The notes beneath the pieces were generated by a model. That model searched no databases, was not told the DNA's origin, and saw nothing but the letters and a program-made list of their open reading frames with translations. Positions 32,518 through 63,480 of a stretch of 64,000 nucleotides of DNA are shown here, in pieces (the first letter of the stretch is position 1; every line of letters starts with the position of its first letter). The position numbers and the translations under genes are program-made. The stretch is from Parasitella parasitica NRRL 2501 (lineage: Eukaryota > Fungi > Mucoromycota), in the NCBI GenBank assembly GCA_025201805.1, contig MU619263.1, forward strand, positions 133,715 to 197,714, read 5' to 3'.

Positions 32518-33846
32518 ATGGATCCCAAGTACGATGAAAAGGCTAAATCCCGTCCTCCTTCCATAGTTAATGAGAAATTTGAAGAGGATGAATATATCTC
32601 TGAAGTGCAAGTCGAACATGTGTCTCAAGCAACGGCTTCATTTGGCAAAGCTTTATTCATGTTACTGAAGGCTTTCATTGGCACAGGTGTTCTTTTCTTG
32701 CCCGGATCCTTTGTCAGCGGTGGTTTAGCTCTCTCTATCGTTCTTATGGCCGTCATTGCCTTTCTTTGCCTCATTGCCTTTCAGTTGTTGGTCCAAGCTC
32801 AACAAAAGGTTGGTGGTGATTATGGTGCTGTTGCTGAAAGTCTTTATGGCCCTTACTTGAGACATTTGATTCAATTCTTTTTGTGTGTTTCTCAAATGGG
32901 TTTTGTAGCTTCTTATATGATCTTTATTTCTGAAAATATCGGCATTGTCGTCGACACCATCAATAATTGTGTTGCCCCCTTTGACTCCAAATATTACATC
33001 TGGATTATCCTTGTTGCTATTATTCCATTCTGTTGGGTCAGAAAAATCGCAAAGCTGTCTTATCTCGCCATCGTCGCTGATATTTTTATTGCTTTTGGCT
33101 TGATCTGTGTCCTCTACTTTTGCTCGAGCCAAATCGCTACGCATGGTCCCGGCAAACACATCATCATGGTCAATCGAAGTGATTTTGGCTTGATGCTTGG
33201 CACTGCCGTCTTTAGTTTTGAAGGAATTGGAATGGTACTGCCCATCGTTGAGAGTATGAAGGAGCCCAAGAAATTCCCTGCTGTTCTGACGCTTGGTTTG
33301 ATCATCTGTCTTGTCATTTTCACGCTGATTGGTACTATAGGTTACGTTGCCTATGGCGATGCCACTCAAGCTAGTGTTGTTTCTAACATTCCCAGAATTC
33401 CTTTATCTACCACTGTTCAATTGCTCTATGCTATTGCTATGATTTTAACCTCTCCATTCATGCTTGTCCCTCCTTTGCAGATCATCGAAAAGTATGTTTT
33501 CGGTACTCGTTCTGGCGAAAAGTGTCTCAAGATCAAATGGGGAAAGAATTTTGTGCGTTCCCTGATTCCTGTCGTTTGCGCTGCTGTTAGTTTTGGTGTT
33601 GGAGCCCAAAATTTGAGCAAGTTTGTCTCCCTTGTTGGTTCTGTTGCTTGCATGCCTCTTTGTTTCATCTTCCCTGGGCTTTTTCATTATAAAACCTCGT
33701 CAAATCGCAAACTCCAAGTCGTCGATATCTTTTTGATTATTTGGGGTGTTGGTATCACTGTGTACACAATGTACATCACTATAAATTCTTGGATTCATCC
33801 TTCCATTGGTGGTGTTACCTTGGCTGCACAATGTGCTCCTTTGTAA
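32518..33846 (+). CDS. Aa_trans (AVT3/AVT4-like) amino-acid transporter, intronless
   Basis: LLKAFIGTGVLFLP, GTAVFSFEGIGMVLPI, FVSLVGSVACMPL, and about 11 hydrophobic segments. Confidence 0.93.
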   Translation: MDPKYDEKAKSRPPSIVNEKFEEDEYISEVQVEHVSQATASFGKALFMLLKAFIGTGVLFLPGSFVSGGLALSIVLMAVIAFLCLIAFQLLVQAQQKVGGDYGAVAESLYGPYLRHLIQFFLCVSQMGFVASYMIFISENIGIVVDTINNCVAPFDSKYYIWIILVAIIPFCWVRKIAKLSYLAIVADIFIAFGLICVLYFCSSQIATHGPGKHIIMVNRSDFGLMLGTAVFSFEGIGMVLPIVESMKEPKKFPAVLTLGLIICLVIFTLIGTIGYVAYGDATQASVVSNIPRIPLSTTVQLLYAIAMILTSPFMLVPPLQIIEKYVFGTRSGEKCLKIKWGKNFVRSLIPVVCAAVSFGVGAQNLSKFVSLVGSVACMPLCFIFPGLFHYKTSSNRKLQVVDIFLIIWGVGITVYTMYITINSWIHPSIGGVTLAAQCAPL

Positions 33847-36009: not shown

Positions 36010-36239
36010 AATTTTTGAGCTGATTATGTTGTTTAATTAGTTATAAAAAAATATGCATTTTTGTATAGATGAAACCAAATCATTCCTATTACAGAAAAAA
36101 GATGCATTTCGTACGATAATGCAGGTACCCGGTGACTGAAAATCTTTTTTTTTTTCCTTTTTTTTTTTCGCTTGTTTCTCAAAATAATTCCTTACTGTCC
36201 GGGTGTATCTTTCTTCTTCAATCAATTGAATTATATAAT

Positions 36240-37041
36240 ATGGGTTTAGCTGGACAAAAAGAAAAACAACGTATAAGCCAAGATCCAAACAACTTATTCT
36301 GGAGTAAAGATGAATCAAAGTTTGGATTTAGAATGCTTCAAAAGATGGGCTGGGCTCCTGGAAAAGGCTTAGGTGTGAAGGAGGATGGTAAAAAAGAACA
36401 TGTCAAGATCAAGCTCAAGGATAATACTTTGGGTGTGGGCGCAACAAAGAAAAATATCGATAATTGGCTTGGAAATACAGATGCATTCTCAAGGTTATTA
36501 GCAGATCTTAATTCTCAACCCACTTCAGAAGCTAGCAGCGTCAATGTATCCGATGCTGAAGAATCCACATCAGTTGTAGATCAACATGGAAATAATACAA
36601 AGGAGAAGAAAAAGAAGAGCAAAAAGGATAAGAAGAGTAAGAAAGAAAAAAAAGAAAAGAAGAGTAAAAAAAGATCGAGAGATGATAATGATAATGACGG
36701 TGAAGATGGAGATGAAAAGAAGAGCAAAAAGAGTAAGAAGGAGAAGAAAGAAAAGAAAGAGAAGAAGGATAAAAAGAGTAAAGACAGCAAAAAAGAAGAA
36801 AAAGTAGCTCCCGTTGCACTGCGTAATGCGTGAGTAGTAGTCATAGTAAACAACATATGAACGATAATTAACTTACATCTGTTTCATCAGTGCTCGTGCA
36901 AAATTTTTGCGTGCAAAGAGAATGGCATCCAGCAGTGGAGATCAAACTCGCTTGAACGAAATTTTGGGAATCAAGGCACCAAGTGGATATAAAACTGTTG
37001 AAACCACATCGACAACATTTATGGCATCTTTCTCTGTGTAG
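36240..37041 (+). CDS. PXR1: G-patch protein Pxr1/Gno1/PinX1
   Basis: MGLAG...DPNNLFWSKDESKFGFRMLQKMGWAPGKGLG...KDNTLGVGA, a KKE/D tail, and a final exon ARAKFLRAKRMA after intron 36830-36890. Confidence 0.92.
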
Positions 37042-37433: not shown

Positions 37434-38533
37434 CTATGACGATTTGATGTTGGATACCATTAAATCCAAGACTTCCTGCACTTCACACTCTTCAAACATA
37501 GGTCCCGTCCTTGAACATTTCGCTCTTTTTCTCAATTCATTGCATAGTTCGTCTGTATTAAATTGATCAATCATTGGATGCATTGCAATTCTTTGCCAAG
37601 CCTCTGAACAAGAAATCAAATCAACAGAAGTACTAGTATTCGATGCAGAGTCTATTGTTGGCAAGAAATTTTCGTTCAAAAATTGCTCCAGCTCATTAAA
37701 TACATCTGTTCTGTTTTGTTCCTTGGTGGCGGATGTAACAATAGGCACTGGATGACTGGCCACAGTCTCATTCAAGTAACCTTGCGCGTCAAATAATGGC
37801 TCAGTCAGTAGTTGGGCGTAGGCATTGGAGCAAACTTCTTCCTTTAACCTCTCACAGAAACTAACGCCATCCTTATCACGAATGCATGCAACCGCAGATG
37901 AAGCTACTCTAGGTGTTGTTGCAACAGGAGATGTATTAGGCGAAGAATTGGTGGAAATTACAGGTGACCGGGTGTCTGATTGGCATGCAAGTGTAGGCTG
38001 TGGTGGTATAACGCCATTGCTACTCGCGGTACCTTTAGACTTGTAAAACTCATTTTGCATATCTTTCAATGCTGCTTTCAGGTCTGAATTCTCTTTTTCC
38101 AGCCGAGATACCTGTAAGGCATGTGCTGTCTCTATTTCTTTGATTTTATCCTCAAGTTCTTTTACATATCGTTCCTTTCTCTCTCTAAAAGCCCGTTGTG
38201 CTGCTCTGTTTTGTTCTTTTCGTCGTTTGCGCTGCTCTGTAGCCAAAGAAGCTGACTTGTTAGAGCCTTGGGAACTTCCGCTGTCTCTTCTCTCTGTATA
38301 AACAATACATGAGCCAAGCCATTAATGGAAAAAAAAAGGTTGTTCAACGTACGCATTTTATTCATCAGTAATCTGGAGTGCTCAGCATCGTCGAGATTAT
38401 CTTCAAATCTCCGTTTTTCTGTATCAAAGGCTTCTGGACGAGGTAGAATCTTGGGCGGCGCAGAAGAAGGTGCAATTGCTCGAAATGTAGCAAGCTGGGA
38501 TGGTTTTTGCTTGAGCTGTTGATGCTGTGCCAT
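37434..38533 (-). CDS. Yap1/Pap1-like AP-1 bZIP transcription factor with C-terminal cysteine-rich domain
   Basis: bZIP RKEQNRAAQRAFRERKE, then SFCERLKEEVC, then the c-CRD LISCSEAWQRI...DELCNELRKRAKCS. Intron 38294-38352 joins in frame. Confidence 0.88.
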
Positions 38534-39761: not shown

Positions 39762-40751
39762 TTATTGAATTGTGCATGCTGCTTTGTTTTTTCTTGAAGA
39801 TCGATTGTTGGTAGTTCCTTCCTCCCAGGCCTGCTGGGAATCGAAGCCAATTTTCATATTATAAGCTGCATAAGAGTTTGCCTATGTATTACAATCAATA
39901 TTTTTGACATTTTTATCATCATTTGTAGAAAAAGCTTTTTTTTTTACCTTGACCCATGCTTCTCCAATTTCAGTGGTATATTCATTCCCTAATCGTTTTT
40001 TCAGGGCAGATGCAAAGGCAGGGCCAACAAGTTCCAAATGCTGTGGCTTCACTTTATAAAAATAGTGTCTTGCACCCAATTCTCTCATTTGAAGCGCAAG
40101 CCATTCGGGATCTCCTTCATCATAGCTATCTTCGCTGCTATCAAAGCTAGTAGCTCTTTTTCTGGCGTTGATATCTTTAATAGTTGTTGGCGTTGAGGGG
40201 GGAGAATCAGGTCCTGCTGCCGAGTAGTTACCAGAACCACCACAGCACGCCGGTCTTGTCAAGGCGGAATTATTATTAGTGACATTGGGAGCTCTTGCAA
40301 TATATGAAATCATGCCAGTCAAGGCTCTTGCTTGTTGAAATACATTGTCAAACAGCTGTCTACAATCTTCATCCATCTCAAACAGAGCATCATAGAAGGC
40401 CAAACCAAAGGCATGAGATGCAGACACATTTCTATCGTCTGTTTCATGTCGAATTTGAGAGACTCTTTCCCAGCTGGTTCGGACGAGGTCAATCTGCTTT
40501 TGGGTAGGTGACATGTCTTCATCTACGCTATTACCGTTCATCATCGGACAGCGGCTTATATCGCCTTGATATCTACTTATATCGGGATGTGGTGGTGATA
40601 ATGGAGGGGACTTCGGAAACCGATTGAAGAACTTGCGTATGTTTGTGCTATTTTGTCTCTTGCTGCCGCCCAGCAGTGACGATGATAAACTAGACTTTGC
40701 GCTATTTGAGCTGGTTAAATATGAAGTTTGTTGAGTTGTGTCAGAATTCAT
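39762..40751 (-). CDS. Single-domain 3/3 globin with a long E-F insertion and C-terminal CaaX motif
   Basis: QIDLVRTSWERV (A helix), AFYDALF (TyrB10), QLF (CD1), QQARAL (E), ELGARHYFYKVKPQHLELVGPA (proximal His), EAWVK. After phase-0 intron 39882-39947 it continues ANSYAAYNMKIGF...RSSRKNKAACTIQ*. Confidence 0.85.
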
Positions 40752-61763: not shown

Positions 61764-63199
61764 TTTGAGAATATAAACTTTAGAAAGTGAAAAAGAAGAA
61801 GAAAAAAAAGAGAAAATAAAAAAAGTTGGCAGAAGAGATAAAAAAGAGCGAATTGTACGTAGCCTAACTGTAAACCAAGTGACGCAGATAGATACTATTG
61901 GTCTCTATTGAAAGACGCTGTGTATCAATCCTTTATCCTAGCAACTCAGTTCATTTTGTTGGCACAAAGGGATCCTCAATTTCTCGTGTTTTTGCCTATG
62001 TTACACTCCTAATGAAACTTGTCCTTATTTAACAACCTTGAACAAGAAGCCTCCTACCCTTCCCTCTCCTTTTAATGTACCTCTTTACATTTGGTGTAGA
62101 AAAAAAGGCATTATAATGAATCACAAGACAACATATCCTCCCCCTTTTTTTTATTAGAATGAAAACAGCATATGCCTGGACCTACTCAACCTGATGCCCA
62201 TAAGAGCAATATGTATATGCTGGTAAATACACAAAAAAAGGCCCGAGTTGCGCTCACGCTTTCATATACACAATACAAAAAATAAAAAGCTAGTAATTAA
62301 AAAGATCAAGAAAGATTAAGCCCTAAACATCTTGTTTCCATGTATCCCCTTACATATCTCACACATTTTTCCAATTCTTCATCAGCTTTGTGGTTTACCA
62401 AAAGGATGTTCAAATGGCCTCACATCTCATCCCGGTTGAGCATTATAAGGATATCTATCGTTTGATGAAAACAGGGTATTTTTGAAAGGCATTTGAAAGA
62501 ATCAGTTTATACAAAAACGAGCTGTTTTTGAATGTACGAAATTCGAATTTTCCAAGTTTTAGTATCCTTAACAACAACCAAAAGAATAAAAGGAGACACA
62601 AAGATATCCTACACATGTGGGATTCGTTTTTCGTTTCAAAAAAAAAAACCTTGATTTATCGTTTTGATTGTGTAGTACAACTACAATGAAAGAGTGTCTC
62701 TTGCCACCACACATATCAATTTGCGGGCATCCAATGGGCCTTGTTTTATATTATAGATTGTATGTTGTTTGGCCTATGCACCTTTAACAGCAATTTTGGT
62801 CGTGTTTACGAAACAATGCAACATTTGGTTGAGGTTTACGTTAAAGTTGACTTGCGAGAGCAAAAAAAGTTTTTAAATCAACTTTTTGAGAAATTATACC
62901 AGAACATTACAAAGATGCGTAGTAGACAAACCTCATTAAGTTACCATCAAAAATCAGGCACCAACATTTTTGTTATGCGGAGCTTAGAAGGGCCGGAAAA
63001 ACCAATGATAGATTTGCTTCTGTACATCCATGAAGTTCCCCAAATCATAGTATTGCAATTTTCTCTCGATTAATGGTACTATATCTTAGAAAAATCTTCA
63101 GAACTTTTTTTTTTAACGAAAAAAAAAAAAAAAAACGATACTTGAATATGATTAAACTCTACTCCTTGGAATCATCTAATGCGTTTAGGATGAGTCAGT

Positions 63200-63480
63200 T
63201 ATTATGTGGATATTATGTTCATGTCCTATTTAATTGCATAGAGATCGACTTTGGCAATACTCGCTTCCCTTGGCTGACAATCTTCTATCAAATTTGATTC
63301 AAGATGTTTATATCCAATCCCGGAATCCTATTTTGTAAATTATTAGGACACCCCTAAACCCGTGATAACACATCTAATCAAGTTTCTTGGTTTAGAAGAT
63401 GATGGTTAATAGTGATATCATCAGATGCGTAAGCTAATCCCTATCTTGATCTTAAATCAAGATTATCATCACAAGTGCTT
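63200..63480 (-). mobile_element. Possible decayed LINE reverse-transcriptase relic
   Basis: Broken frames give LAYASDDITI (compare LAYADD) and, downstream, IPG..YKHL (compare YKYLG). Confidence 0.3.

Follow-up and report, generated by a model that had tools for sequence, protein, structure and literature searches.

The question raised by the gene at positions 39762 to 40751 of a 64,000-nt stretch of contig MU619263.1 of Parasitella parasitica NRRL 2501 (the whole stretch is called the window below) is how a globin that carries no reductase and ends in a CaaX box would be placed and used in the cell. The analysis pointed to a single-domain globin of the flavohaemoglobin (F) family whose CaaX box is conserved in the Mucorales. 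Our favoured reading, held with somewhat more confidence than doubt, is that the protein is farnesylated and tethered to a membrane, where it would act, together with membrane-bound reductases, as a nitric oxide (NO) dioxygenase or as an enzyme handling O2 or reactive oxygen species (ROS). It is probably a membrane-tethered haem protein with an anchor of a type not described for globins in the papers that could be searched.

Gene structure and the spliced C-terminus

The region was read on both strands, and the globin gene was found on the minus strand of the window in two exons, with a product of 307 amino acids (aa). The features of the gene that are needed first are the following.

40751..39948, minus strand: exon 1, 268 codons from the ATG at 40751, with the Ser-rich N-extension (residues 1-79), helices A-G and the insert between helices E and F (the E-F insert)
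39947..39882, minus strand: intron of 66 nt, GTAAAA...ACATAG (GT..AG), phase 0, inside the H helix after ...EAWVK
39881..39762, minus strand: exon 2, 39 codons and TAA, with the remainder of the H helix, the flexible tail, CTIQ and the stop codon
39777..39803, minus strand: RSSRKNKAA stretch, moderately basic, directly upstream of the CaaX Cys
39765..39776, minus strand: CaaX box C304-T-I-Q307, predicted farnesylation site

Exon 2 is translated as ANSYAAYNMKIGFDSQQAWEEGTTNNRSSRKNKAACTIQ before the stop, and the protein ends in RSSRKNKAA-CTIQ. If it were not spliced, the frame would continue for 21 codons into the intron and stop at the last intron triplet, and the H helix would be cut short. 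Both the intron and the CaaX-bearing end had been proposed in the sequence-only reading of this DNA, and five independent lines of evidence showed that the predicted splice is real. The public P. parasitica protein model P0004 (228 aa) is 100% identical to the window, has the same junction and ends in ...KNKAACTIQ, so the tail, which had been called hidden, was already present in a public model. When six orthologous loci were compared by script, public protein against genomic DNA, five of them proved to have a single phase-0 intron at the equivalent site, following A-W-x-[K/R/S], with lengths of 58 nt in Mucor circinelloides (clade A), 62 nt in Mucor lusitanicus paralogue B, 210 nt in Phycomyces, 98 nt in Syncephalastrum and 50 nt in Rhizopus. 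The globin gene of Absidia glauca (L012 6001-6801) is intronless and has the H helix and a CILQ end in one open reading frame (ORF), and two Logan contigs of an orthologue that is 66% identical show no intron across the same K-A junction. In the AlphaFold (AF2) model of P0004 the H helix is unbroken through the junction, with predicted local distance difference test (pLDDT) values of 95-97, and the protein sequence of exon 2 is conserved in over 50 models. The tail is missed, with ...AWVKV... read into the intron, by some 40 database ORF calls of prokaryote style; these are unspliced calls made on genomic contigs.

The intronless state of the A. glauca gene could reflect either a loss of the intron in its own lineage or a gain in the other Mucorales. 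Logan contig L001, which was considered as a same-species partner of the intron-containing genomic ORF call, was rejected in this role, since P0006 and P0009 are only 89% identical and therefore come from different genomes. A transcript origin of the intron-free L001 is likely; the contig has no poly-A tail.

The start of the protein differs between the window and the public model. P0004 begins at an internal Met (MSPTQ), which is residue 80 of the 307-aa form. Mucor orthologues are 79-85% identical to exon 1 over 100% of its length, N-extension included, and the blocks NIRKFFNRFP and KSPPLSP of the N-extension are common to Thamnidium, Pilobolus and others. The ATG at 40751 is the likelier start because the 79 codons upstream of the internal Met are conserved in all of these, and the annotated P0004 is probably truncated at its N-terminus (window 40500-40751, minus strand), as judged from this comparison. 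The two exons were searched separately, P0004, which is identical from residue 80 onward, was used as a stand-in for the spliced product in the structure work, and the orthologue P0002 of Mucor took the place of the complete 307-aa form.

Conservation of the CaaX box

To collect the family, a word-indexed protein collection was searched with exon 1 and with a family profile, and 111 proteins were returned. All named matches better than E = 1e-33 came from Mucorales, in about 25 genera, followed by a cyanobacterial globin at E of about 1e-24 and an unnamed protein of similar score, and from E = 2e-15 by unnamed globins of about 135 aa of the bacterial single-domain type. As far as this word-indexed search reaches, the CaaX globin family appears to be restricted to the Mucorales. 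Among the 58 models that include the H-helix exon, 53 had a C-x-x-X end, and the five exceptions were three models flagged as partial, one that runs together with the following gene and one whose tail is aberrant. Counting four proteins missed by the pattern, the total with a CaaX end was 57, with a composition of C-x-[I in 43, L in 9, V in 3, other in 2]-[Q in 55, S in 2].

The column of the CaaX Cys, like that of the proximal His, shows no variation. In columns anchored at the C-terminus the Cys had an entropy of 0 bits and X one of 0.2 bits, in comparison to 2.4-3.6 bits at most of the twelve preceding positions, with the exception of a Lys at -7 that is kept in 68% of the family members. 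The 12 residues upstream of the CaaX box held on average 2.9 K/R and 0.5 D/E, in comparison to 1.4 K/R expected from composition, and the net charge of these residues was 0 in 11 of the 57 members. The sequence-only reading had described the tail as a polybasic CaaX tail; the CaaX part was confirmed, while the stretch before it is only moderately basic, with 4 K/R in 9 residues. By a rough estimate, a C-x-aliphatic-Q end occurs by chance in about 0.03% of proteins, which is a few per proteome, and its retention in 57 related proteins is not chance. A quick maximum-likelihood tree, with Shimodaira-Hasegawa-like approximate likelihood ratio test (SH-aLRT) support only, put CaaX sequences into every mucoralean clade and left the bacterial globins, which have no CaaX, outside, from which it follows that the box is older than the duplications within the family.

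The box also agrees with what is known of farnesyltransferase substrates. In a comprehensive yeast screen, Q at X was a positive determinant for farnesyltransferase, I at a2 was positive in a Ras-based assay that reports farnesylation, cleavage and methylation together, and the restrictive residues were D/E/K/R at a2 and K/P/R at X (PMC10320760). No restrictive residue was found at a2 or X in the CaaX boxes of the globin family, and CTIQ agrees with the rules for CaaX farnesylation (a Cys four residues from the C-terminus, an uncharged a2, ideally I/L/V, and X other than K/R/P, with Q, S, M and A favouring farnesyltransferase). These position rules were used because CTIQ, CVIQ and four related endings were not found among those entries from the supplements of the yeast CXXX screen that the analysis covered. 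The AF2 model showed no secondary structure after the H helix, with pLDDT of about 50 or lower, and the protein ends 13 residues after that helix. No signal peptide was seen, by eye only, at the N-terminus (MNSDTTQQ...). The genome of the window contains the machinery for prenylation, in that ICMT loci scored above the cut-off, as did three Prenyltrans (beta-subunit) loci.

In its tail the protein resembles canonical CaaX proteins such as K-Ras4B, Rheb and the PRL phosphatases, its C-terminal CaaX box having an aliphatic a2 and Q or S at X and following K/R-rich residues on a flexible tail. The PRL phosphatases, for example, end in CCIQ or CCVQ. The Parasitella cargo, however, is a haem globin and not a GTPase or phosphatase, and its basic patch is weaker than that of K-Ras4B. 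A second comparison is with vertebrate globin X and the nematode GLB-26-type globins, which, like the Parasitella protein in our favoured reading, are cytosolic globins tethered to a membrane by lipid (PMC7475203). The anchor of globin X and the GLB-26 type is N-terminal myristoylation of Gly2, with or without palmitoylation of Cys3, in contrast to the C-terminal CaaX box of the Parasitella globin, which belongs to a different enzyme system. The N-terminus of the latter is MNSDTT (MNS, MAS or MTS in the orthologues), and it has no Met-Gly myristoylation site.

In a 2020 review of globin diversity, N-terminal acylation of globin X is the sole form of membrane anchoring described, and prenylation is not mentioned (PMC7475203), and the fungal globin census of Hoogewijs et al. 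does not mention prenyl, CaaX, farnesyl, myristoyl, palmitoyl or membrane anchoring (PLoS One 7:e31856, 2012, PMC3287990). A literature search, with most subscription journals outside its reach, found no paper on a prenylated, farnesylated or CaaX globin, and a search for globins together with Mucorales found only beta-globin controls for the polymerase chain reaction and reviews citing the fungoglobin of Aspergillus. The family itself has been known since 2012, and the new element is the order-wide CaaX box on a globin, which would make it a membrane-tethered globin with a different anchor. If the reading is true, these would be the first prenyl-anchored globins described, and the C-terminal prenyl anchor would be a second, independently evolved route of a globin to the membrane.

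Globin fold, haem pocket and likely function

Exon 1 matched the Pfam Globin family (PF00042) with 28.1 bits against a cut-off of 22, in comparison to 30-32 bits for the orthologues. No Pfam domain besides Globin was found in exon 1, in exon 2 or in the full-length orthologues, and in particular no FAD/NAD reductase and no output domain. The best sequence matches among solved structures were Chloroflexus HbRC (3wfw), Hell's Gate globin I (3s1i/3ubc) and the flavohaemoglobins 1cqx and 4g1b, with solved flavohaemoglobins matching at E of about 4e-4 to 6e-4, and no S-family or protoglobin structure was among the matches up to E = 1. The AF2 model of P0004 is a 3-on-3 globin with a mean pLDDT of 81.4 and a predicted template-modelling score (pTM) of 0.74, in which helices A, B, C, E, F, G and H are all predicted at pLDDT >90. 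Foldseek gave 3s1i as the top match, with a target TM-score of 0.83 and a globin probability of 1.00.

40056..40400, minus strand: haem-pocket residues Tyr120 (B10, in AFYDALF), Gln140 (E7, in VFQQARA) and His229 (F8, in LGARHYFY)

In the alignment to 3s1i, the Tyr of AFYDALF corresponds to Tyr29 (B10), the second Gln of VFQQARA corresponds to Gln50 (E7), and the His of LGARH is the proximal His; in an alignment of 41 sequences the columns of Tyr B10, Gln E7 and His F8 were all invariant. The reductase-less globin with Tyr B10 and Gln E7 described in the sequence-only reading was thus borne out, and by sequence and modelled fold the protein is a single-domain F-family globin and not a flavohaemoglobin proper. 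It is predicted to bind haem. With single-domain F globins from bacteria (3s1i, the globin domain 3wfw and Vitreoscilla haemoglobin 1vhb) it has in common the 3-on-3 fold, Tyr B10, Gln E7, His F8 and the absence of a fused reductase; unlike it, these globins have about 135-150 aa and no N-extension, E-F insert or lipidation signal. The flavohaemoglobins (Escherichia coli Hmp, yeast Yhb1 4g1b, Ralstonia FHP 1cqx) have a homologous globin domain with the same type of distal pocket, and their NO dioxygenase activity is the reference function. They carry an FAD/NAD reductase, whereas the Parasitella globin has none and its electrons would need to come from a separate partner.

Hoogewijs et al. reported two single-domain F globins per Mucoromycotina genome, most of them with N- and C-terminal extensions, which clustered apart from other fungal F globins; the extensions were trimmed for the phylogeny, and only single-domain F globins were found in Mucoromycotina (PMC3287990). 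The Parasitella globin belongs to this same family, and the present analysis adds to the 2012 census the CaaX tail, the motifs of the E-F insert, the Cys-Pro (CP) motif and the synteny with Yap1. A Pfam Globin scan of the whole Parasitella genome gave no match, not even the globin of the window, which is too weak at genome scale. In the controls, E. coli, B. subtilis and D. radiodurans, the same scan did pick up the family, and the empty result is therefore usable solely as evidence against a canonical flavohaemoglobin. The Parasitella genome, and the Mucorales generally, appear to be without a classical flavohaemoglobin with a fused reductase.

A catalytic role is favoured because no canonical flavohaemoglobin was found in the genome scan, the other globin locus of this genome looks like a pseudogene (described below) and the 2012 census listed single-domain globins only; redox chemistry with NO or O2 is accordingly rated more likely than sensing. 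In the favoured mechanism, the cytosolic farnesyltransferase would farnesylate Cys304 on the flexible tail, after which -TIQ would be trimmed and the new C-terminus carboxyl-methylated at the endoplasmic reticulum (ER). The globin would then be held on the cytosolic face of a membrane, aided by the mildly basic stretch, and the anchor would place it beside membrane-bound electron donors, for example NADH-cytochrome b5 reductase with cytochrome b5, and raise their local concentration. It could then turn over as an NO dioxygenase or as an O2/ROS-handling enzyme, in effect a flavohaemoglobin split into two parts that are assembled at a membrane. Regulation would fall to two additions to the globin, the E-F insert and the disordered N-extension, which is rich in Ser/Pro and carries the Cys-Pro motif. 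If true, the membrane anchor would explain how a reductase-less globin finds its electron donor. The protein is an obvious candidate for NO/O2 handling because the Mucorales appear to lack a classical flavohaemoglobin, and the order includes the agents of mucormycosis, for which such a role bears on the survival of host nitrosative stress and hypoxia.

Several points weigh against this reading. The basic stretch is weak in comparison to K-Ras4B and no Cys adjoins the CaaX box, so the farnesyl group alone would probably give only loose binding, mainly to the ER or endomembranes. Farnesylated Ydj1, Pex19 and Nap1 use their lipid for contacts with proteins and not with membranes. The reductase partner is a guess, and the proximal-side residues that a flavohaemoglobin should have, Tyr G5 and Glu H23, gave no clean alignment by eye. 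Among the gene models behind the CaaX tally, overlap of annotation pipelines is possible. The adjacency of a Yap1-type gene is tempered as evidence of coupling because it is part of a syntenic block of four genes and because the Rhizopus locus has DER1 and the globin with no Yap1 there.

A wider version of this reading, in which farnesylated globins throughout the order replace the flavohaemoglobin together with separate membrane reductases, those of the Mucor-like branch are controlled by haem through the Cys-Pro motif, and the family is linked genomically to Yap1, is put forward tentatively and is rather doubtful as a whole.

The features that would serve a regulatory role lie outside the globin fold.

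40539..40556, minus strand: SRCPMM, residues 66-71, a Cys-Pro in a context like that of haem-regulatory motifs, within the disordered N-extension
40101..40253, minus strand: E-F insert, with PACCGG (residues 167-172, 40236-40253), a Pro/Ser/Thr-rich linker, the conserved TIKDINARKRA helix and, ahead of the F helix, an acidic run

In the full-length model of P0002, residues 1-79, Cys-Pro motif included, were predicted as disordered (pLDDT of about 40), as were the last 11 residues. The E-F insert has about 60 aa, the E helix ending at P0004 residue 73 and the F helix starting at 136, with about 62 residues between them, in the AF2 model, in which residues 79-101 are at pLDDT <50 and an extra short helix (TIKDINARKRA) is formed at residues 112-122. 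The CP dipeptide of SRCPMM and the insertion with ACCGG are thus present as the sequence-only reading had stated, and they differ in how widely they are kept. At the homologous place, [R/K]-C-P-hydrophobic was found in Mucor, Thamnidium, Pilaira, Pilobolus, Blakeslea and Backusella, it is conserved in the Mucor-like part of clade A, and it was absent in the Rhizopus, Syncephalastrum, Apophysomyces and Absidia members, while ACCGG with its CC pair is limited to the nearest genera. Both paralogue clades have retained the T-I-[R/K]-[D/E]-[I/M]-N motif.

These segments are an argument for the alternative that the protein is a membrane-tethered gas or redox sensor, which would report O2, NO or haem status to a partner in signalling with no turnover, the N-extension, with its Cys-Pro motif and Ser-Pro sites, and the helix of the E-F insert forming the output or regulatory surface. 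We regard this as unlikely, even though long non-globin segments are conserved (NIRKFFNRFP, [R/K]-C-P-hydrophobic, and TIR[D/E]INARKR with the acidic run), disorder, which is common in regulatory regions, is predicted for the N-extension and part of the insert, tails of the Ras-like kind are typically found on signalling proteins, and the neighbouring gene encodes a redox-regulated transcription factor. By sequence and fold the protein groups with the F-family globins and not with the sensor globins of the S family, in agreement with Hoogewijs et al. (PMC3287990), it has no output domain, and many CaaX-bearing members lack the CP motif and the CC pair. The sensor role given in the sequence-only reading is thus speculation, and the link that it drew to the dimorphism of Mucor is not specific, since the organism is P. 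parasitica, a mucoralean mycoparasite, and the family is order-wide, while among Mucorales only Mucor species are dimorphic (PMC11034785).

A second alternative, which we consider improbable, is that the protein is farnesylated but largely soluble, the lipid serving protein-protein contact or folding, as in Ydj1, Nap1 and Pex19. In yeast, many of the proteins that farnesyltransferase modifies never arrive at a membrane (PMC10320760). The moderate basic patch and the absence of a palmitoylation Cys adjoining the box would suit such a protein. The "shunted" proteins, however, carry a non-aliphatic a2 (CASQ, CKQS, CKQQ), whereas 55 of the 57 globins have I, L or V at a2, a context with good scores in the Ras-based assay of full processing, and the enrichment of K/R upstream of the box is conserved.

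It is still less probable that the terminal Cys is kept as a redox-active thiol, for a disulphide or as a haem ligand supplied by the tail. The flexible tail could reach the haem pocket, and Cys thiols regulate other globins; this would, however, leave unexplained the fixed distance of three residues to the C-terminus, the aliphatic a2 and the Q or S at the end in 57 of 57 proteins, all of which are determinants for farnesyltransferase. Finally, the possibility of an annotation artefact, in which the proposed splicing does not take place and the real protein terminates within the intron, as in the roughly 40 prokaryote-style calls, has hardly any chance of being right, given that those calls are unspliced ORFs on genomic contigs, that exon 2 is conserved in the many models counted above and completes the H helix with high confidence, and that the two exons are contiguous in the Absidia gene and in the intron-free Logan contigs.

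Neighbouring genes and the second globin locus

The genes and gene remnants identified near the globin in the window are the following.

44705-43768, minus strand: DER1-like gene of ER-associated degradation (ERAD), multi-exon
41620-41279, minus strand: methyltransferase relics (Methyltransf_11/25), 36 aa at 58% identity and 33 aa at 48%
38485..37437, minus strand: Yap1/Pap1-type bZIP transcription factor, two exons, directly downstream of the globin (Pfam bZIP_1 37 bits, PAP1 40 bits)

The Yap1-type gene of the window is 73% identical to the neighbouring gene in Mucor. The order DER1, methyltransferase, globin, Yap1 on one strand was found in Mucor circinelloides, Phycomyces blakesleeanus and Syncephalastrum racemosum, and the order from globin to Yap1 was found in five genera, namely the Parasitella of the window, Mucor, Phycomyces, Syncephalastrum and Apophysomyces. 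The locus of Mucor paralogue B has kept the methyltransferase and has no called Yap1. In the Parasitella genome the methyltransferase between DER1 and the globin seems, from the relics, to have been lost or to have decayed. The synteny may be a matter of inheritance and not of functional coupling, and it gives only a hint of a link to the control of oxidative stress.

In Apophysomyces ossiformis, protein P0080 (639 aa, annotated "DNA-binding transcription factor yap1") joins the N-terminal part of the globin to the bZIP/PAP1 gene; this is almost certainly a merge in gene prediction that skips the stop codon of the CaaX exon.

The only other globin locus in the Parasitella genome looks, from its sequence, like a pseudogene.

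L003 about 1430-2215 (G000:C161 about 62400-63300), plus strand: second globin locus (clade B), looks like a pseudogene

This clade B locus has a frameshift in a run of 14 T within the B helix, perhaps through an error of assembly, in-frame TAG and TGA codons (KL*ELGAMH in comparison to KLRELGARH in the family, the asterisk marking a stop) and a degraded H-helix exon. Its tail reads SNWLIQ before the stop in comparison to SNCLIQ or SNCVIQ in the Mucor paralogues, the codon of the CaaX Cys now encoding Trp. With these pseudogene features it was rejected as an intact comparison within the same genome.

Two further ORFs were recorded on the other side of the Yap1-type gene.

36132-36833, plus strand: ORF with a G-patch domain
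32518-33846, plus strand: ORF of 442 aa for an Aa_trans amino-acid transporter

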